Of a DNA stretch of 64,000 nucleotides, positions 1,251 to 52,000 are shown in pieces. Below the pieces are notes generated by a model, which was not told the DNA's origin, searched no databases, and saw nothing but the letters and a program-made list of their open reading frames with translations. Position 1 is the stretch's first letter. Every line of letters begins with the position of its first letter. This DNA comes from Zygnema circumcarinatum SAG 698-1b (lineage: Eukaryota > Plantae > Zygnematophyceae): positions 2,159,580-2,223,579 of the forward strand of contig CM074819.1 of assembly GCA_037447605.1 (NCBI GenBank). Direction: 5' to 3'. The position numbers and the translations under genes are program-made.

Positions 1251-2252
1251 GAATTTTAGTACTTACTGACCTCTTTTTTAGCACTACTAAAAACTCGACA
1301 CGCCTTAATGCCATCATCAAAGAGGGAGAAAGTGGCATTGGACTCACGATGGCGATGATGCCATCAAATGTCCATGGACGAAATTGGCATAATGGGAAAC
1401 CACGAGGAACTGGGCGCAAAGGACCTGAAAGGCGTTCAGTGCCGAACAGCTTTTCAAAACTTGAGGGGAAGTTACTCACAAAGAAAACCGTAGTTCTGCC
1501 ACTGGTTAGAAAGGGTGGGGACTTGACGACCAGCATCAACCATTTCCACATTGTAAAGGTCAGCGGCGTAGAATGGATGCACGCTATTTAGTAGGGGGAG
1601 TTAGACTTAGCCCGGAGCGTACTAAATTCCCGAATTTAGTATACTAAAAGTCAAAAGTTTCGTGTCGCCGTATCCAGCCGTACCGAGATGCAGACCTAGC
1701 CGATGCTTAATTCGCCCTACACGCTTACTAAATTGATTTGGCCATGCATTAAAACTGACTTTTCCTGGTGTGAACAAGTTGAAGATTGCATCACGGCTCT
1801 TTTCGTTTATTCTTTCAAAAAAAAATAAGGATCATCATTTTCAACCCTCCCTTTCCTCCCTCCCCCCCCTCGTCTCCCTCCAGCTTAGCTGCTGTTTCCC
1901 GTGAAGAGGATTTTAGAAAACGTCATCATTGAACACAAACCCACCATGCTAATACATAATTTAGAATGACACACGAGCGGTTCAAATTCTCCGCCTGAGT
2001 TCACCTCTCAAACTTCAACGTTTACTGTTCGGCGGGCCACCATCATGAAAACTTATTACAATAATATAGCACTGTTGTGGTCATATGCTTTAGAGACCCA
2101 AAGTTCAAAAAAGATGCGCAAATTCCTCCTCATAATGGCCCAAAATGTGCTCCGAAGACAACCAACCAACTAACAAGCCAACCAACCAACCAAACGAACG
2201 GGCCAACCAACCAATCTGAGCCATCCATCCATCCATGGGTCCATTGGTTGGT

Positions 2253-2561
2253 CTAAGGATCTCTCGCAGGCGGAGGGTTCGGGCGGCGCGGAGGCGGCCG
2301 TACAGGGGGAGGGCGGCGAGGCGGAGGCCGCTTGGAAGGAGGGGGGCGGCGGGGAGNNNNNNNNNNGGAAGGGAGGGAAGGAGGGAGGAAGGGAGGGAGG
2401 GAGGGAGGGCGGCGGGGAGGAGGGCGCCGAGAAGGAGGGGGGCGGCGGGGAGGAGGGCGGCGGGTAGGGGGAGGCGGAGCCGCTGCACGACCGCAAAGTA
2501 GAGTATCAGAGCACTACTACAGAATGAGTTGGCAATGGCACAGTTCTAGAGGACGAGCAAG

Positions 2562-2610
<49 letters not shown>

Positions 2611-5600
2611 TGTACTATCGCTACATCGAAATCAAACAAGAAATGATTGAAATTGAGATTTTTCGAAAAATGATATGCTGGTGTGTTCGAAGAAAGCTGT
2701 GCACCAGGTTGAAGAGCATCATTTCTAAGTCTGCATTGTGATTACATTTCAAGGCTGTCGGACAGACTTAGGAATTTTCAAACATTCAAGCAGAGCACGT
2801 TTCAAGTCTGTCTGCCATTACGCTTACCCCATGAACTTGAGATCCCAGTCACACGTGTGAGTTTCTTGATAGAGTAACTTACCGGGCCACGAGCTCGCAA
2901 AGTTCCACGTCTCAATCAATTGCAAATTGTAGCAGGACCCTGTAGCGGCAGTGAAGCCAATGAATGCCGAGTCGACGTTCGCACACGTACTGCAATTGGA
3001 CGGTTGAAGAATTGAGCACAATGACTTGGTGTAGGTCAAGCGAGGAGCCGTATAATCATTCACATAGATAGACCAAAGGCTCGTTTGGCTGTTGTATTTC
3101 ACCCAAGCGTATTTTACATCGTATGAGTAAAAGGCACCGTCGTATTCGTAGAAGGTGTTACGACTGGACACCACTGAAGTCAGGCGAGATGTAATGGTCG
3201 TGGCGTTGAAGTCCATGAGTATGCCAACATGTTCCCCCGGAGGATCATTTAACTCTTCATTTGGGTATGTGTCAAATTCTATGGCAATTGAGCCCACTTT
3301 CGGGGAAGCTGTGTAGGTAAACGCAAGGGTGTCACCACTGCCTGTTCCAAAGCTCGCCAGATCCGCATTGGAGGGAACGATGACGAATGTGAAGCCGGAA
3401 CCATTACATTTACTATGCCCAGGATTCTCTCCGATCAGGAACGAAAAGTTAGTCTCAAAAGAGGCTGCTTGGCAACCCCCACCCGCTTTTCGCGTCAACG
3501 TGACAGGAGACCGATAAAGTGCAACCCCCGCTTCCTCTTCTTGAGCATCCGTAAGTACCAAATTTGCATCATAATCAATTGTTGCACTGCCTTGCAAAAT
3601 GAGTGGAGTGCTACTTGAGGAGGAGAAGGCTGCCGGGGTGGTGAGAGCTGCATCACAAAGTGGCGGAATATCAAGAGTTGCGAATGTGGAATATTCAAAG
3701 CGTGTAAATAACGCAAGCATGACCAGCTTGAAACATATAGACACGTTCACAGGCATGGTCAGCACTTATGATAGAAATTTAGGCATCCCATCTGAGTTTC
3801 ATCATGAAGTGGCACGTAATTGGTGAAGGAACATGTGTGACGTCAAACTTGCTTAATCCACAAACTCTAAAAGCATGACATGACGACTGAGGAGAGAACA
3901 GTTCCCTTACGGGGAGGAGCTGGAGGGGACGGGGGCACCTTGTATGCTGCAAACGACAAAACCTGGCAACAGTTTAAATGAGAGGATTACATTTACAAAG
4001 ATGAGATGTTCCTCGTAAAGTGATCATAACAATTTTCAGTGCTGGCACGAGTAAAAGACAAACAGCAACCCATTCGACCGTAAATCACGGTGCTTTGAAG
4101 AGTACTTTCGAGCATCGCTATCCATCTATGGGCAAACATACGACTGCAAGCAGCAAATGGACTCTGATAAAGAGACCGAGTGGAGATGGGGGAGTTGGCA
4201 ACGCACCCGTCCAGTTGCTCTCAAAGCTCCACGACAAAATCTGATGAGCATCATAGCAATATGACGTTGCAGCGGTGAATCCAACGAAAGCCGACGTTAC
4301 GTTGACACAGTCCGAACAGTTGGGTGGCCGAAGGATGCTGCAAAGGGACTTGTTGTAACGGAGAACATGATACGCAGGTTTGCTGTCTTCATTGCTCAAG
4401 AACACTGACCACTGGCTGGTATCACCGTTGTATTCCACCCATGCATACTTCGTCGATGACAAGTCGAAAAGAAGGGGCGTAAATTCAGATAAGATAGTCG
4501 TGAAATCCAGGTTTTCAAGTATTCGAACCTGTCTTGGATCAGGCCAACTGTGGGGTGTTATGGTCGTGGGAAATGCGACTGCTATGGAACCAACCTTGCC
4601 ATATCCTCCGTACGAGTACCCGAGGCTCCCGGCCATGTTTACTGACCCAATCTTGCTCAAGTCCGCATTGGAAGCAACAATAGTAAAAGTAAGGCCCTCT
4701 CCGTCACAGAAAGTATAGTTGTTGGAAATGAGAAACGAAAACCTCGCCTTAAAAGAAGCTGCTTGGCAACCTCCAGTTGCCTTTCGGAGCAAGGTCACCT
4801 GAGCTGGATGGAATGCATTGCCATTTTTCTCCGAGTGAATCCCCGTAAGCTGCAGCCTGCTGCCAACGATTGATGCGTTGCCTTGCATGATGGGAGGTTG
4901 GCTGGTGTTGAACCCAACATAGGTGAAGGCTGTCGGAGGAGTGAGTAATGCATCACCAAATAATCCAGAAGATCGGAAATAAGTGGACGAGCAATGCATC
5001 TGTTTCGTAGCTGGAAGAAGGGAGAGTACTGAATGGAACTAATCCACTTGGGAAGAGCTTTCTGTGAGACATTCCAGCTTGGAATCATTCACAAAAATCC
5101 GAATGACGATTGGTTAAGCAGTCGGAAAGGAAACGGTCGAGGAGAAAAAAAAAGCACAGCAGTGTTGTTTTAGAAGCACAGTTCTGTAGTGGTTTCAGAT
5201 GGAGACAAGAGAGTGGGAGGGAAAGGCGGGAGAGGGAGGGAGAGGGAAGTACAAAGTACATTGATCCAGGAGACTATCGCTCACACTGTATTTACTATGT
5301 TAGAAGGACTGACAACACCAAATCTACGGCACTCCGAACTCCCATTGCACACTACTTCCAGCCTTGCGACCTCCCTTGCCTCCATCACTTCACTACAAAC
5401 TCAGCAGAAGCAGCAGCCACACATCAATCTCTACCACATTTGCCAGCCCAAAACTGTGACCTTGACCTTCCTTCTTTTGCATTCGCAGTCGTTGCAGCTA
5501 GGCAATAAGGCGACGGCCATGCACTGCGGCACGTACGAGAGAGGGTGGGCAAGGTCCGTACGTGGAGAGAGAGCAGCCGCGCCCACAAGCGCAGCGCAGA

Positions 5601-5631
5601 GGAGGAGCGCGCTCGCGAGAGCCGTGGCCAT
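2253..5631 (-). CDS. Predicted 4-exon secreted protein: signal peptide + two tandem L-type (legume) lectin domains + Arg/Pro-rich tail
   Basis: Exons 5631-5562 (MATALASALLLCAALVGAAALSP), 5010-4207 (lectin A), 3647-2883 (lectin B) and 2482-2253 (RRPPP repeats, TAG at 2255-2253). All three introns are GT-AG and phase 1, and the internal exon lengths (804, 765) keep frame. A 10-N gap at 2357-2366 lies in the last exon. Confidence 0.7.
2883..3647 (-). CDS. L-type lectin domain B (exon)
   Basis: Motifs LQGSA, SFETNFSFLI, GSGFTFVIVP, IAIEFDTYPN..NDPPGEHVGI, YAWVKYN and AFIGFTAATG..IETWNF are the legume lectin fold signature. Confidence 0.92.
4207..5010 (-). CDS. L-type lectin domain A (exon), metal-ligand motif degenerate
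   Basis: Motifs MQGNA, SFKARFSFLI, GEGLTFTIV, YAWVEYNG and AFVGFTAAT..ILSWSF. Clearly paralogous to domain B. Confidence 0.88.
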
Positions 5632-5703
5632 GGCTGCCGCCCCTTCGCCCGCCTTCCTTCCTTCCTTCCCTCCCACCCTGCCGTCACGGGGTTTTTAGGG
5701 TTT

Positions 5704-6143
5704 TGTAGCGTAACGCTACAGCGTGACCCTGGAGGCGTACTGATAGTGATACTATGCCTATCCCTTCATCTCAGCGCCTAGCGGATAGGTTAGGACGTTG
5801 CCAAGACCGCGGGGGTCTTGGGCTCGATCCTTGTGGCGTGCAAAGGATCTCTTTTGGATCGTACTGGTCGTCCGTACAGGTGTACGGACGCACCGACATA
5901 CGGATCCCGCGGCCAGAGATTNNNNNNNNNNCCGCCACGCGGCGGGCTCTGATTGGGCAGTCCCGCTCCCGGTCCTCCATGCTGGTAGGGGGTTCGAAGG
6001 GGGGAGCTTAAGGGGGCTGCGCCCGGATGGGGGACCATCCGAGCTCTTTGTACCAGCATTGAGCTCACGCTCCTCTCTCTCTCTCTCTTCCTCTCTTGAC
6101 ACTTAGACTCTCAGAGCAGCCTGCCAGGGGGCAGGTTGTTACA
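5704..6143 (+). repeat. Putative 5' LTR
   Basis: Starts TGTA (5704) and ends TACA (6143) immediately before the PBS. The 5' boundary is inferred only from TG..CA termini because the second LTR is not visible. Contains a 10-N gap. Confidence 0.55.
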
Positions 6144-8953: not shown

Positions 8954-9823
8954 TTGACCCTTGTTGAAGCGTTTGAGGATGTATTCCCAGACGATCTGCC
9001 AAGGGGTCTGCCTCCAGCCAGAGGGGTGGGGCATACCATACCCCTTGAGCCAGAACAGAAACCTCCTTGGAGGCCTATCTATAGGCTTAGTCCGAAGGAG
9101 ACTGAGGAGATGCGAAAGCAACTCGCTAACCTGCGTGAGAAGGGCTGGATTGAGCCCAGCCAGAGTCCCTTTGGGGCTCCCATCCTCTTCGTTGGTAAGA
9201 AGGATGGGTCTTTGCGAATGTGCATCGATTATCGAGCACTCAATAAGATCACGGTAAAGAACAGGTTTGCTTTACCGCGCATAGATGATCTTCTGGACCG
9301 TCTGCAAGGGGCGAAGGTGTTCACCTCGCTCGACCTTGCGCAGGGGTACCATCAGATCCGTGTCACGGATGCTGATGTTCCTAAGACGGCATTTCGGACG
9401 CCGATTGGTCACTTCCAGTACAAGGTGCTACCTTTTGGACTGACCAACGCTCCGGCTACATTCCAAGCTGTGATGAACGAAATGTTCGTCGGCATGGATG
9501 AGTTTGTCCTTGTCTACCTGGATGATATCCTGGTATTCAGCAAGACGGACGCTGAACATCTTGTGCATGTACGCAAAGTGTTCGAGGTGTTGCGAAAACA
9601 CACGTTTTATGCCAAGCGAAAGAAGTGTAACCGTACAACGAGAGTTGTTGTATCTTGGGCATATCTTGAACGATCAGGGACTGAAACCTGATCCAGCCAA
9701 GGTGTCTGCTGTAAAGACATGGGCTGTACCGGCTGATCTTCATCAGTTGCGGTCTTTTCTTGGATTTGCGAATTATTTTTATTAAGTTTATCCAAGGCTT
9801 TAGTAAGTTAGTAACACCTCTTA
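8954..9823 (+). pseudogene. Reverse transcriptase of the gypsy element (frameshifted)
   Basis: YLDD catalytic motif present. A frameshift near 9625-9640 separates AKRKKC from ELLYLGHIL, and a further disruption precedes FIQGFSKLVTPL. Confidence 0.9.
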
Positions 9824-9923
9824 NNNNNNNNNNNNNNNNNNNNNNNNNNNNNNNNNNNNNNNNNNNNNNNNNNNNNNNNNNNNNNNNNNNNNNNNNNNNN
9901 NNNNNNNNNNNNNNNNNNNNNNN
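9824..9923. other. 100-N scaffold gap
   Basis: N run. The left side is retroelement pol and the right side is a JMJ20 exon, so sequence of unknown length is missing. Confidence 0.98.
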
Positions 9924-22073: not shown

Positions 22074-23994
22074 ATGGCTGCTTCTGGGATGATCTCTTCT
22101 CCGGAACCTTTTCTGGCCCCTTCAAGCCAGCGCCCTTCCCCTTTCCCTCGCCCCTCTCCCTCTCCTGCGCCTTCAGGGCTTCTGCAGGAGTCAGTTCGAG
22201 GCCCTGCAACCTCAAAATCTTCACTCCTGAGTCTCCCTCCAAGGAGAAGAGCAGAAGCCCTCTTGCTGGACATGGCGGGCCTCTGTGGGAGAATCTTGGA
22301 ACTGACACGTGGTAGTCAGGCGGAAGGGAGGGCTGTTTCTTCTTTCTCACAAAAGCAAGGCGTTGGGCAGCAGTTTCTGGCAGGGGCGGTGGTGCCGCCG
22401 GAGGGAAGGAGCGCCACGGGCGTGAGGGAGCTTCTCAGCATTCTGGAAGCGCACCAATCCCTTCTATCAGAGTCTATCGCGGAAGTCCAGGAGCTTCAGG
22501 TGAGGATATATTTTGGCAGTATTCCCGCAGGGTTTTCGGGTATTTGGGGCTCTTTTAAGTTTATAATATTTGTAGATTCACAACGGACATGTGCTCTCGA
22601 AGTTCACATCATTATCTCAAACCTGTAGATTCATGAAGTTTCAGCAGCCCATAAAAAAGTCGAATTAGCAATCTGGGCTCGGGCTCTGGATGGACCTTCT
22701 GGTCAAGGACTGTGAATACAATTTGAGTTTGTGGTGTTAACGCAGAAAAAGCTGCTTTCTTTCTCACTCGGTGGCTTAGAAAGTAGAGATCCTAAAACCC
22801 CTCGAGGAATATGCAGGGTGGAAAACGGGAGAGGGCTCATCTCATCTCACGAACAAGTGAAACTTCAGCAGCGCTTCGCCAGTTTGCAAAACGACTTCGA
22901 GATTCTCAACTTCTCCTGGAGGGCACTTTGGATGATTATCAAGAGTACAAGCACTTAAGGAAAAGGAAAAGCACTGAGGAAACGACAGTCGAGCGTTCTG
23001 AAGGGAGCCATGGAAGTCCTGTACAGAGTGATTTAGATACACAGGAAAAGGAGTGCTCAGGGCGCTCAACAGTCGACGTTCAAGACCTCATCGCTTATGC
23101 TCACAAAATTAGCTACACCACTTTTGCACCTCCTGAATTTGCCCAGGGATTAGGGTTGATGGGAGTCCTGCCTCCTGCTCCGCAGGATGAGCAAATGAGA
23201 GCATCAGCACTTTATCATTTCACAGATGAAGAGCTTGGTGTTCCCAAACCTCCAGAACCATCTGCAGATGAACCTACTTCTGAAGCAAAGGAAGCTCTGA
23301 TTGCTCCCAAGCAGGAGTCAGGATTTCCTCCTCCTCCATCCATGGCTGCAGGTGGTCCTCCTTCAGCTTCCCTAACAACGTCAATCAAGAAAGAAGGAGC
23401 TGCTCCCTTACCACCACCACCACCTCCTGGATGGAAACCCGGTGATCCAATTACTCTTCCTCCCCCTCCTCCTGGGTGGAAACCGGGTGACCCCATCCCC
23501 TTACCCCCCATGGCCGGCCATCCTACTGCTGCTCCCCCTGGTCACCCTGCAGGTGCTCCTAGACCTGCAGGTCCACCAGCTGCTCCTTCCTTCCAAGTTC
23601 GACATGTCGAGGTGAGAGCTTTCTTTTCGAGTTAACTTTCTCTCTAAGGTCCCTTTCTATTTGAAGTCCAGGAATTGGTAATGCTGGTGCATGGGCGATT
23701 CTTGTGTCTCTGTTTGCTTGCTTGCTTGCTTGTCTAAAACCAAGCAGAATGGCTTGCTCAGAAGGGGATAGGTAAGAAGTTGTTTGTTGAAGATCATTAT
23801 GTGCTAGAAATCGTAGTTAGTTAGAGCCTTTTGTTTGTGGAAATCACAGAATGCAGGAAGAATGTTCCATCCTTGCTTTCAAGCATAAGATAAACACATG
23901 TTTTGTTTTTCTTCATCTCTGGCAGCTCGACTTGAATCCGGAGCTGGAAGACTCGGACAGCGATTACAGTGGTTCATCGGATGAAGAGGATTAG
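22074..23994 (+). CDS. MED4: Mediator subunit 4 (3 exons; start could be the later ATG near 22272)
   Basis: DLIAYAHKISYTTFAPPEF, LPPAPQDEQMRASALY, PPPPPGWKPG x2, QVRHVE|LDLNP...DYSGSSDEED*. Confidence 0.92.
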
Positions 23995-25571: not shown

Positions 25572-27020
25572 TCAGACTCGCATTAAAGTACAAGTACTAA
25601 ACCACCGAGTCACCAGCCCCATTTGTGGAGGATTCAACTTCTTCCACCCCTCCTTCCTCCCCACATCCTGCATGTACATGCATGGCCCGGCCATCAGTTT
25701 TCCAATTCTTCCGTTAAACGGAAGTCTCGCAGCCCACGCTTCATGTGCATCCGCTGCATTTGGGTCTTCCCCTCCCACCAAAAAAACTTTACTTTCAAAC
25801 CCAGCAAGGGAAACAGCTCCCATAAACCCTGTCGTAGGAAGGGGCCCCACATTCTCCCATACTTCCTCCTTCCCATCATATATTCTGAGCTGATATGTTC
25901 TATCCACATTCAAGGAGGGAGCTGCATCCAAAAGATAGAGTCTGTTGCTCCTTGAATCTAACCGAGTATAGAACGGCGGACTCGTATTTGAAGGGAAAAA
26001 ATGTTCCTCTGTAGACCACTTTCCACTCACCGGATCATATACATCTGCAAGCCCCTTCGCCCATGAGCTTCTCACATAGAACTTTCCGTTCACAGTTGCT
26101 CCCTGACATTCTAAAGCCGGCATTCTCTCCGAATCCCAGGGCATATCTGCAATTTCTTTCCAGCAATCTTTCTCTAAGTCATAGATTTCTGCAGAATGGA
26201 GCGAATCATGAGCATAATTGAACCCAGCTCGCAGCCCTCCTGCAATGTACAGCTTATTTCCAATCACTGCACTCGCAAACCGGTCTCTCGGAGTCAACAT
26301 TTTCGCCCCTTTGGTCGCTTTCCCAGTCAAAAAATCATATCTCCAAATCTCTCCGGTCGGAATAAACCGGTCAAATTCATCTGAAGGATATGCCCCTCCG
26401 CAAAATATAAGAGTGCTCCCAATTGCAATTAGCCGAGTACAGGGCGATATCTTATTACTGAAAGGGAGGCAACCCAAATCATGCCAAGTTTCACCTTCAA
26501 TTTGAAAAACCCACAAATGGGCGAAAATTTCCTGCGACCCTAAAGAAGCCCACTCAAGCGCACATAGAAAGGCCTCTTCAGTTCCTGTCAGGTGTCGCGT
26601 GCGCAGGAGCTCTCCGCTGTCTGCCACGTGTCGCCATCTCCTGCAGACGCTCCGAAGCTTCTGGAAGCTTCCAAGAGGGACACGTGCCAGGCAGAGAGTG
26701 GAGAGATCGTCCGATGGAATGCCCGGAATGAGCTCGGACGAGTCATGGGAGAGGGGAGGAGGGGAGGGAGGGAGATGAGAGGGAGGGCGAGAGGGAGGGA
26801 GGTGGGAGGAGGAGGAGGAGGATGGGAGAGGGCGAGGGAGAGAGGCGGGAGCATTGCTTGAGGCGCAAGTAGGCGTTTTGGAGTTCGGAGATTTGAGGGT
26901 TTTTAGGGTTTTTTTTGGGAAGCAGTGGATGAGGGGAGCCTTTGGAGAGTGGGCAATTGGGTCAAGAGAGGAAGGGGAGGAGGTGGGGCCAGCTTTAGGT
27001 TTGCTTGGTTTGGAGCCCAT
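25572..27020 (-). CDS. F-box/Kelch-repeat protein (single exon, 482 aa)
   Basis: F-box LIPGIPSDDLSTLCLARVP..LRSVCRRW followed by Kelch repeats (LIFCGG, KLYIAGG..SAEIYD..W, KFYV, KVFLVGG). The N-terminus MGSKPSK resembles a myristoylation motif. Confidence 0.92.
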   Translation of the reverse strand: MGSKPSKPKAGPTSSPSSLDPIAHSPKAPLIHCFPKKTLKTLKSPNSKTPTCASSNAPASLPRPLPSSSSSSHLPPSRPPSHLPPSPPPLSHDSSELIPGIPSDDLSTLCLARVPLGSFQKLRSVCRRWRHVADSGELLRTRHLTGTEEAFLCALEWASLGSQEIFAHLWVFQIEGETWHDLGCLPFSNKISPCTRLIAIGSTLIFCGGAYPSDEFDRFIPTGEIWRYDFLTGKATKGAKMLTPRDRFASAVIGNKLYIAGGLRAGFNYAHDSLHSAEIYDLEKDCWKEIADMPWDSERMPALECQGATVNGKFYVRSSWAKGLADVYDPVSGKWSTEEHFFPSNTSPPFYTRLDSRSNRLYLLDAAPSLNVDRTYQLRIYDGKEEVWENVGPLPTTGFMGAVSLAGFESKVFLVGGEDPNAADAHEAWAARLPFNGRIGKLMAGPCMYMQDVGRKEGWKKLNPPQMGLVTRWFSTCTLMRV

Positions 27021-29714: not shown

Positions 29715-35138
<5,424 letters not shown>

Positions 35139-49000: not shown

Positions 49001-52000
49001 ATCTTTGAGCGGGCAATTCCCGCCATCCTTCCATTTCCAGCTTTATGTGTTCCATTTCCCCCATCTTGCAACCCCGACTCAACAAATTCAAATTTCCTTG
49101 CAGCCAATCTTTGCCGAATTTTCTTAATCCGCCGCTTTTGAACGACCGGTGCAATTGCTCGCCGATCCTTTTTTCCATCACTTGAGCTGCTCTCTCCACT
49201 CTCTTTTCCCCCACTCTGACCCCTTAACCTTCCTTCAATACTGGAAGACCGCCGCCTGCCACCTGGCGAGCCACGATAGGTCGGATCTGCGGTAGAGGCA
49301 CTTCCGGTGTGCCTCCGTCCAGCCACGTCAGGTGAATCGCAGCGTCTCCGTTCCGTTGCGTCTGACGGAGCAGCTCGTTCACGGATAACGCTCAGATAGA
49401 GTTGCCTTCGTGCTTCACTATGCTGCAGACGCTCAAGGAGACGCTGGGCCATAAGGGCTGCCTCTTCCTGAAAAAGGGAGGGGAGGGAGGGGAGGGNNNN
49501 NNNNNNGAGGGAGGGGAGGGAAGGGAGGGAGGGAGGGAGGAAGGGAGGGAGGGAGGGAGGGACGGATATTTAGAGGTGATTTTTTATCGCTATAATCTCG
49601 TGCTTTTAGAATCTCACATACACGGAGAGAGAGAGAGTGAGAGTTCTGTACCTTCTGGGCTTTCACTCTCTCCTCCTTCTTCCTTGCCGCTTCCAAAGCA
49701 CGAGCCTCTCTTTGCGCAGCTCCCGCTCTCCTCTCCTCCTCCCTGCGGGAGAGAGCCTCCTCCTTCTTCTTCTGAGCTTCAGCAATCTTCTGTTGCCTCT
49801 CTGCTTCAAGCTGCTTTCTCCTCTCCAAAGCTGCCTCTTCTCGGGCACCGTCTTCCCTCTGCTTTTGTCGCAAACTTTGAAGCCGACCGAGTCTGCGAGC
49901 TTCAGAGTTCTGCCAGTTCATAGTAAAATTCAACCAGAAAATAGGTATCACATGAGAATGCCAAAAATGACCACAAAACCTGGTATTGTACCAACATGAA
50001 CTCTCAGAAACTCTAAAATTCCCTTCTCAAGAAACTGCCCTTCTGAAAGCTTCACGCATCAGCAACTTTTTCACTCCTGCAAACCCGTGAATGCAGCTCA
50101 TTCCCCTCTCACGAAAACCCACAAAATTCTCTTGATCTCAAAATTCGAGAGATCTCAAGATCAGGATCGAGATTCTCAAGATTCTTTAACTCAAGATTCT
50201 CAAAATTCTTTAAACCCCACCTTCGGAGCCTTCCTTCACATACCTCCAGCTTCTGCTGTAGGGAGAGTTTCCTATTCTCATCGCTCAGACTCATAATGAA
50301 GCGAACTTCATTCACTTTGCTGCTCTCATCTCCCGCACGGCGAACTCTCTCTGCAAGATGTGCTTCGTGACGCGCGTCACCATCCTGCTGCCTCCTCTGC
50401 ATCCCCTCTCGCAGTCTCCTCCTTCTCACTGCCTGCCATTCACTCACCCTACCACCCTTATACTTTACAATCAGGGGCTAAAGCAGAAACAGCAGAAGAT
50501 TTTGTCTCGTGAGTTGGTGTTTTGGTCTTCTGGTCGATAGGGCAAGTGGGGTTGAATTTCAGGGGCTATAATCACTCACCCTACCACCCCTCTACTTTAC
50601 AATCAGGGGCTAAAGAAGAAACAGCATATGACTTTGTCTCGTGAGTTCGTCTTTGAGGTCGTCTGGTCGATAGGGCAACTGGGGTTGACTTTCAGGGGCT
50701 ATGAACACCTAGATACAGGCAAAAGTGCAAACATCAAATTCTACTTCGTAGCTTGTCACAGGATTGGGATTGAAGCAAATAAGAGTAGAAGCTAATATTT
50801 ACCACAGAAAGCAGAATAACATTAGCTCTCACCTGCGCAATCTCTCTGTAGACCTCTGAAGTCGTTGCTGCCTCTCATCGTTCATCTCCTGCCGCGACCT
50901 CGACGCACGGAGCAACTTTTCATCCACTTCCTGCATCCCTGAGCATTGGGGAAGAGTTTGGCGACGTAAACTTTGAAAGCCGACAACAGCTACTACTCTG
51001 TTCAAGCTTAACATATGCACTCTTTTGCAGCAGATATCTGCAAAAAGCGTTCAGGAATTTATGGGGTTTTTTTCGGGGTTATTATTATGTTTTCTTTCCT
51101 TTTTGGCATACCTTCTGCGTTTCCAAAGGAGTCTTCTTCTTTCTGTTAGGTGACATGAACTTCTCATGCAACCTCTGGAAACTTTCTGCATTTCTCTGCT
51201 TCCGTGCCGAGAAAGAGGAGAGTGCTGTTCTGCTGAGAGGGCCAATCACCCCCTTTCCACTCTTTGGCTGCGTTGTGTTCGCGGCTGCGGCTACCAAAAT
51301 ATCGACCCAACTCTTCTTTTCTCTCCATGGAAGTCCCTTGCCATCGACAAAGGAAGATCCATTAATTTCCTCTACAACAGAACCTGCTGTTAGTTGCTGC
51401 TCTTTACTGACTGCCTCCTTCTCTCCATGACTCTTTGATCCTATATCTCTCTTTCGTCTTGCTTTTGGCTTCTCCTCATTGCATGTGGCTTTAGGTGTTC
51501 CAATTTTCAACTTTACATCACCCACTAGTTGAGATACATCCTGAAGGTCTTCTCCTTTCCTCCTCTCTCCTTCTTCTCCCTCCTCTTCTCCTCCTCTTTT
51601 CGAGCCCTCGCCGCACTTACCAGCATCAACAGAAGCTGAAGACCGGCTTCCACTATTCTCCTCCTTGTTAGCTATTGTATCTACCACATCGCTGCTGCTG
51701 TTTATTTCCAAACTTAACCTCTTCTCCATGCCCGCGTCATCCCCACACCTTTCTTCGTCCATATTAGAATTTTGCTGGAGTTTAGATTCCAAAGCTTCTA
51801 GTTCTTGAACAGTTTGAGATTGTGCACCTAAATCACTCTCCTCTATCTCCCCATTTAGAACCACTCGTCTGCATGCTGTTCCTCCACAGTTTTCAATGTT
51901 TTCTAGGTTTTTTCTCTCATTCTCCTTGTCAAAAAAGACCAATTCATTGTCATCACCATTCACTCTATCCCCTCCTGCTTTGACCTCCTCCTTGACTCCA

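Follow-up and report, generated by a model that had tools for sequence, protein, structure and literature searches.

We report a gene for a tandem L-type lectin with an unusual C-terminal tail in the zygnematophyte alga Zygnema circumcarinatum SAG 698-1b. It lies within a stretch of 64,000 nucleotides (GenBank assembly GCA_037447605.1, contig CM074819.1, forward-strand positions 2,159,580 to 2,223,579), which was analysed as a whole and is called the window below; all coordinates refer to positions in this window. The gene is real, transcribed and spliced, and it extends on the minus strand from ~5650 to 1960 with five exons. As deduced from its sequence, it would encode a secreted protein of ~600 residues comprising a signal peptide, a first lectin domain (lectin A), a proline-rich (Pro-rich) linker, a second lectin domain (lectin B) and a C-terminal tail rich in arginine and proline (Arg/Pro tail). 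The pair of lectin domains originated by an internal duplication, and the protein contains neither a transmembrane (TM) segment nor a kinase.

Gene structure and transcripts

The gene structure was derived from the contigs of four public sequencing runs (X1, X2, X3 and X6, obtained from three studies and carrying one organism label), which were aligned to positions 1900-5900. In all four runs the contigs behave as RNA, with deeply covered exons and with introns 2, 3 and 4 shallow or nearly empty. The division into five exons follows from the contig joints 5562|4929, 4207|3946, 3911|3647 and 2883|2482. All major joints read CT..AC on the plus strand, corresponding to GT..AG on the minus strand. 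The original prediction, which was made from the DNA letters alone, had joined two long minus-strand open reading frames (ORFs; 4118-4999 and 2824-3765) into one protein encoded by four exons. The contigs agree with the proposed succession of signal peptide, lectin A, lectin B and tail on one mRNA, but the number of exons had to be raised to five. At the first junction, predicted as 5562/5010, the donor was correct, but the acceptor in use in the spliced contigs of X1, X3 and X6 is 4929. The 27 N-terminal residues formerly placed before lectin A (TKQMHCSS...) are therefore intronic. A direct junction 4207/3647 had been expected next; both sites are used, but a micro-exon of 36 nt intervenes, whose two joints 4207|3946 and 3911|3647 were seen in all four runs. 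In X1, each of these joints is represented by one contig with the identical depth of 472.4, which would fit one contig that spans lectin A, the micro-exon and lectin B. The last junction, 2883/2482, was recovered as predicted in spliced contigs of X2 and X3, and the loose ends of contigs in X1 and X6 agree with it.

Translation starts at an ATG at 5631 and, according to the DNA and the ORF list, yields a hydrophobic N-terminus of 23 residues. The coding part of exon 1 (5562-5631) thus comprises 23 residues plus one base (MATALASALLLCAALVGAAALSP) and would specify a signal-peptide-like sequence, with the donor located after 5562. Above ~5651, the read depth drops to 0 in three runs. Shortly before the ATG, at 5641-5685, there is a G-rich (GGAA/GGGA)n stretch, which forms an inverted counterpart to the microsatellite in the tail exon. 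Intron 1 (4930-5561; 632 nt, GT..AG) is partly retained in the contigs and contains the mispredicted acceptor 5010. Exon 2 (4207-4929) provides 240 whole codons for lectin A, including six cysteines and seven N-glycosylation sequons. The micro-exon (exon 3, 3911-3946) sits between the lectin domains and encodes the Pro-rich linker A-YKVPPSPPAPP-P; as it is in phase 1 on both sides, the reading frame is kept. Exon 4 (2883-3647) contributes 254 whole codons for lectin B, also with six cysteines and with an intact Ca/Mn motif. The coding part of exon 5 (2253-2482) specifies the Arg/Pro tail, which ends with ...RRPNPPPARDP followed by TAG (2255-2253). Two (GA)n/(TC)n microsatellites are located at 2562-2605 in intron 4 and at 6080-6095 upstream of the gene.

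The 3' untranslated region (3' UTR; 1960-2252) is ~290 nt long and contains a (ggtt)n-rich stretch that is common to other transcripts. At 1960, an X3 contig terminates in six non-templated A and then passes into Illumina adapter sequence; these non-genomic A residues place the poly(A) site near 1960. Further 3' UTR contigs cover 1960-2226 and 1967-2205. We also considered a kinase hidden downstream of the tail, but rejected this option because of the stop at 2253, the poly(A) site and a tblastn search of the window with the TM-kinase part of a related receptor kinase (P0003, described below), which gave no match. This bears out the original proposal of a protein that lacks both a TM segment and a kinase.

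Two L-type lectin domains with different metal sites

By sequence, both domains are members of the L-type lectin family. Exon 2 matches Lectin_legB (PF00139) with an E-value of 2.4e-27 (96.5 bits) and exon 4 with 6.5e-35 (121.3 bits), compared with a gathering cut-off of 26.3 bits; exon 4 also matches PF18483 below threshold. The two domains share 44% identity (BLASTP, E 2e-61). Among proteins of solved structure, the best relative of lectin B is peanut lectin (PDB sequence search, E 6e-14), while lectin A can be aligned over its full length with pea lectin (E 4e-7). For lectin B, an AlphaFold model based on an 11-sequence alignment reached a pLDDT of 80.7 and a pTM of 0.83. The top 50 Foldseek matches of this model are all legume-type lectins, one of them a pro-concanavalin A precursor, with E-values of ~1e-14 and TM-scores of 0.66-0.79. 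The model thus predicts the jelly-roll fold of legume lectins for lectin B. Its sole unconfident part is a 12-residue insertion at residues ~150-170, an aromatic-rich (Tyr/Phe) loop that is absent from lectin A.

The metal loop of lectin B (EFDTY-N---NDPP--HVGI) matches that of peanut lectin almost letter for letter and contains all Ca/Mn ligands (E-x-D..N..D..H), including the Asn that also contacts the sugar. The corresponding loop of lectin A, AFPTTITPH-SWPDPRQVRI, has zero Ca/Mn ligands. The domains also differ in net charge, with -12 for lectin B and about neutral for lectin A. Four of the six cysteines in each domain (C58, C210, C218 and C221 in the numbering of lectin B) are near-invariant in an algal clade and absent from the legume reference in our alignment, which suggests disulfides that legume lectins lack.

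The Arg/Pro tail and the assembly gap

The tail DNA (2482-2253) is C/T- and CG-rich and reads as Arg-Arg-Pro-Pro-Pro repeats in one frame. Its repeat unit comprises 11 residues (33 nt) of the form x-RRPPP-RRPPP, in line with a period of 33 in Tandem Repeats Finder (TRF). The reading frame is fixed by the phase-1 splice at acceptor 2482, and exon 5 begins with A-APPPPT-RRPPP-RRPPP-S-RRPPP-RRPP, of which at least 52 bases are backed by spliced contigs. The expectation that the cationic exon is transcribed and read in the RRPPP frame was borne out by these contigs and the 2883|2482 splice. As written in the assembly, the tail has 71 residues, among them 38 Pro and 18 Arg/Lys versus one Asp, without Tyr or Cys. 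Judged from this sequence, the (x-RRPPP-RRPPP)n array probably measures at least ~75 residues with a net charge of ~+17. A composition check of the tail revealed no hydrophobic stretch and no hydrophobic end of the type found with glycosylphosphatidylinositol (GPI) anchors.

An assembly gap of 10 N (2357-2366), whose length is estimated or conventional, lies inside the tail exon and remains open in the reference. The flanks of the gap are in one frame as written, because codons end at 2367 and the first two bases after the gap complete a codon; given the conventional length, however, this in-frame arrangement proves nothing. More informative are contigs of X1, X2 and X3 that enter the gap by eight letters from its 3' side and continue the RRPPP codon repeat (coding strand ..cgc cct c|ct ccc cgc cgc..). 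On the other side, the gap adjoins an (AGGG)n-type microsatellite of 55 bases (2367-2421, TRF period 4), which was skipped as a repeat in the read alignment. As written, this stretch would encode SLPPFLPPSLPS and read ...RPPSLPPFLPPSLPS. Microsatellites of this type flank three of the five gaps in the assembled window (2367-2421, 31920-32040 and 49470-49560, the latter two with gaps at 31977 and 49497), so that the assembler evidently breaks at this repeat class.

A variant tail and a possible paralog

Run X6, which comes from another study, differs at every variant position, with single-nucleotide polymorphisms at 2989, 3005 and 3360 in lectin B and more in the tail; it probably represents another strain. 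Over the tail and 3' UTR (2199-2356), only a variant version with five substitutions and a 4-base deletion was present in X6, with a loose end at 2356. One X6 contig connects the last bases of the lectin B exon, via a somewhat altered exon start (A-T-A-P-P-P-P), to the post-gap tail, without a gap and in the RRPPP frame, and from this join the post-gap sequence of the window runs on to the same stop. This bridge implies that lectin B is translated into the RRPPP frame of the tail. The gap-free and much shorter repeat array of X6 would represent either an allele, and hence a tail-length polymorphism, or a close paralog.

A second X6 contig of high depth (642; ends of the joint at 5568 and 3946) connects the signal-peptide exon, with its last six bases differing, directly to the micro-exon and thereby skips lectin A. 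This contig is most likely derived from a single-lectin paralog rather than from exon skipping. In addition, the tail and 3' UTR are covered several times more deeply than other parts, and contigs diverge at 2159 and 2192 in all four runs; together with the single-lectin contig, these observations fit a paralog. They suggest a basic layout with a signal peptide, the Pro-rich micro-exon, one lectin and the tail, to which the gene of the window would have added lectin A between the signal peptide and the micro-exon.

Relatives and origin of the lectin pair

An exhaustive protein search with lectin B returned 959 proteins at E<=1e-3, of which the best is 38% identical; hence neither the window protein itself nor a close ortholog occurs in the library searched. 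The exons were used as separate queries, so that these searches covered single domains. A word-index protein search with lectin B gave two weak matches, but its length filter drops proteins of ~600 residues as well as short Logan fragments, so that this near-blank result means little. The top-scoring relative, the EukProt transcriptome protein P0003 (E 8e-51, 32-38% identity to the window domains), begins with a signal peptide and a Pro-rich segment, to which two Lectin_legB domains, a Ser/Pro stalk, a TM helix and finally a kinase are joined. Two Lectin_legB domains each were likewise found in P0013, P0014 and P0026, and many large relatives from the exhaustive search show two to four matched stretches. 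The original prediction knew of no described tandem pair carrying a cationic polyproline tail. With regard to the pairing this does not hold, since tandem L-type lectins occur in these four proteins and are not new in themselves; the tail fared better, as none of the 150 best relatives of lectin B (0/150) shows an Arg/Lys-Pro repeat or a Pro-rich C-terminus. Our literature search, too, retrieved no paper on RRPPP repeats of plants or algae, nor one on an L-type lectin that carries an Arg/Pro tail.

In the maximum-likelihood phylogeny, both domains of P0003 pair together (support 99/100), while lectin A and lectin B of the window group with P0008 (89/92) and are mutually nearest, with 47% identity. 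These groupings imply that the duplications in the window gene and in P0003 occurred independently and that the former is lineage-specific. The duplication of a lectin exon had been proposed on the grounds of a common phase-1 donor position. It is now further backed by the mutual closeness of the domains and by homologous acceptor sequences: the acceptor region of exon 4 reads gtgatgcag|ctctcacc, the homologous sequence before lectin A has cag changed to cat, and lectin A uses an acceptor 18 bases downstream of this decayed site. No further lectin copy was found elsewhere in the 64-kb window.

The full-length member of the P0008 cluster, P0154 (Logan run SRR8128907), combines leucine-rich repeats (LRRs), an EGF-like region, a Pro-rich linker and a lectin. 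Because this linker directly precedes the lectin, a Pro-rich segment in this position seems ancestral to the clade. The closest relatives, P0003 and P0154, both come from algae and have a Pro-rich segment ahead of a lectin of the same Cys-marked subtype. P0154/P0008 represent the closest lectin clade in the tree, and the linker of the former contains RPPP motifs; they differ from the window protein by a single C-terminal lectin, an LRR head and the lack of an Arg/Pro tail.

Other features of the window

Adjoining the 3' end of the lectin gene, the plus-strand ORF 7-528 matches NADH dehydrogenase subunit 5 (Proton_antipo_M, 9e-18; NADH5_C) and is probably an organelle-derived insertion or fragment. 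A plus-strand ORF at 8954-9691 encodes a reverse transcriptase (RVT_1, 2e-36) of a retroelement and lies beside a 100-N gap (9824-9923). Further ORFs were found at 22811-23635 on the plus strand, with a match to Mediator subunit 4 (Med4), and at 25572-27020 on the minus strand, the latter intron-less and encoding 482 amino acids with an F-box and Kelch repeats.

Discussion

What could be the role of such a protein? We give about an even chance to an extracellular-matrix lectin that would be held by charge, through its cationic polyproline tail, on polyanionic polymers of the wall or mucilage. The signal peptide would export the protein, presumably into the matrix, where the tail might form an extended cationic rod of the polyproline-II type. 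Much like the hydroxyproline-rich rod of the original prediction, it could bind polyanions ionically, for example homogalacturonan or acidic mucilage, and so retain the lectin part at the wall or within the mucilage, with the acidic globular part (domain B, net charge -12) displayed outward. Domain B, with its metal site and the new aromatic loop, would be the likelier ligand-binding head, while domain A may more probably serve as a spacer or as a module for oligomerisation or protein binding. In land plants, basic hydroxyproline-rich glycoproteins and extensins bind pectin ionically. Zygnematophyte walls contain pectic polymers as well (PMC10762512).

Several points weigh against a matrix-bound lectin of this kind. 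The N-terminus was judged signal-peptide-like by eye. Regarding the transcripts, contigs cannot prove that all five exons are present on every mRNA molecule, and intron 1 is retained at 1/3 to 3/4 of the spliced depth, with unspliced contigs of lower depth at 4900-5591 and 4651-5566. As read-through from exon 1 meets a stop (81-aa ORF), these RNAs are probably unspliced or non-productive. In the same intron, near 5215 and 5479, some contigs run on into unrelated sequence, as a repeat element inside the intron would produce. The central part of the tail (2357-2421), consisting of the gap and the microsatellite, is provisional as written, and the true repeat number is therefore uncertain. With respect to the ligand, the Asp of the 'A-D-G' loop, which forms a triad with Gly and Asn and is essential for monosaccharide binding in legume lectins, is replaced by Ser in lectin B (G-S-G) and by Glu in lectin A (G-E-G). 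The idea of two glycan-binding heads is therefore not supported, all the more as lectin A has no metal ligand; from the residues at these sites, carbohydrate binding by either domain appears uncertain, and as both have replaced the key Asp, the protein may recognise something other than a simple sugar. Finally, the tail is not a classical extensin by its sequence. It contains no Ser-Pro(3-5) repeats, its Ser residues precede Arg/Lys, and the one S-P-P is located in the linker. Tyr cross-link motifs (YxY, VYK) are likewise missing, since the written tail has no Tyr and the linker a single one. For lack of both features, we do not class the window protein as an extensin.

Alternatively, the protein might be secreted as a decoy for lectin receptor kinases or as their co-factor. 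It would then be a kinase-less tandem ectodomain whose ligand in the apoplast is that of the kinases and possibly not a sugar, with the tail merely keeping the protein near the surface. It would fit that the top-scoring relative P0003 is a tandem Lectin_legB protein of the same Cys-marked subtype with TM helix and kinase, and the loss of canonical sugar residues is typical of the ectodomains of lectin receptor kinases. However, the tandem pairs arose independently (P0003 domains 99/100; window domains with P0008), the identity to P0003 is only 32-38% and no partner kinase is known in the genome, so that we consider this role unlikely. A defence agglutinin, whose lectin part would bind microbial surfaces while the Arg/Pro tail acts as an antimicrobial-type peptide, either attached or after proteolytic release, seems similarly improbable to us. 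With ~50% Pro and ~25% Arg/Lys, the tail resembles peptides of the PR-39/Bac type, and the deviating tail length in X6 would be expected of a fast-evolving defence gene. High contig depths might be added, though they are a poor measure of expression. Nevertheless, the resemblance is one of composition only, and no processing site is present.

Less probable still is a sexual adhesion or recognition protein for pairing or conjugation between mating types. The evidence for it is circumstantial: a secreted lectin that looks bivalent, strain or allele variation in X6 that could fit a mating function, and three runs of the same species label without sequence words of the gene, so that condition or strain may decide whether it is expressed or present. 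A literature search on Closterium and legume lectins yielded nothing relevant to this role. Very improbable, in our view, is that the tail is partly an assembly artefact, with the gap and the microsatellite hiding a frame change or an early stop, so that the real protein ends differently. The gap does lie inside the exon, the adjoining 55 bases are a microsatellite skipped in the read alignment, and the C/T-rich stretch has no stop in any of its three frames. Against this, it is the 2883|2482 splice that sets the frame, and spliced contigs back it over the first 52 bases of the exon or more. The contigs that reach into the gap from its 3' side continue the RRPPP codon repeat, and the gap-free X6 contig links lectin B in frame to the post-gap tail, from where the window sequence runs to the same stop.

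The comparison with known systems puts the proposed matrix lectin in context. Legume lectins (peanut, 2PEL; pea, 2BQP) share the PF00139 match of both domains and, for lectin B, the modelled fold (TM-score 0.73-0.79) and the full Ca/Mn motif. The window protein differs from them by an identity of only 20-27%, six cysteines per domain, the replaced sugar-binding Asp in both domains, the missing metal site of domain A, and the tandem arrangement with Pro-rich linker and tail. The likeness to the receptor kinase P0003 extends over the signal peptide, the Pro-rich segment and the two Lectin_legB domains of the same Cys-marked subtype, but in P0003 these are followed by a Ser/Pro stalk, a TM helix and a kinase, whereas the window gene stops after the Arg/Pro tail. 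Without a TM segment or kinase, its product is not an L-type lectin receptor kinase. Chimeric lectin/extensin proteins, such as the solanaceous hevein-extensin lectins and the algal chimeric extensins, are secreted as well and carry globular modules of a carbohydrate-binding type on an extended Pro-rich segment. The window protein deviates in its lectin type, in RRPPP instead of Ser-Hyp4 repeats, in the lack of Tyr cross-link motifs and in a tail that is C-terminal and strongly cationic. According to a review (PMC10762512, citing Liu et al. 2016), green algae possess long chimeric extensins that are absent from land plants.

Volvox ISG and the pherophorins also combine one or more globular domains with a Pro-rich rod. 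For ISG, the basic C-terminal end is reportedly important for matrix assembly. Their globular domains are unrelated to L-type lectins, and they belong to the chlorophyte lineage. Pherophorins have two globular domains (PMC9818292); their rod is placed between these heads and not at the C-terminus. Altogether, the architecture described here is unusual, yet it is a variant of the lectin/proline-rich design of wall proteins: the domains and their tandem pairing were already known, and the Arg/Pro tail is new among the relatives compared.

As a tentative extension, which we regard as possible but doubtful, the (RRPPP)n tail might be a distinct, reusable cationic polyproline rod for anchorage in wall or mucilage. 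It would be common to a small local family of L-type lectins, including the single-lectin transcript of X6, and its variable length might tune the distance of the heads from the polyanionic matrix. If true, such a reusable RRPPP anchor would represent a novel type of lectin tether in the cell walls of streptophytes.

No algae are more closely related to land plants than the zygnematophytes, and the proteins of their walls have hardly been studied. In land plants, L-type lectin domains mainly occur as free seed lectins or as ectodomains of receptor kinases. A secreted tandem L-type lectin on a cationic Pro tail, abundantly detected, would add another use of this domain before or beside the land-plant radiation. 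The independent tandem duplications in the window gene and in an algal receptor kinase illustrate how lectin modules were shuffled as exons in this lineage, and the tail may provide a simple module for the retention of proteins on pectin or mucilage.

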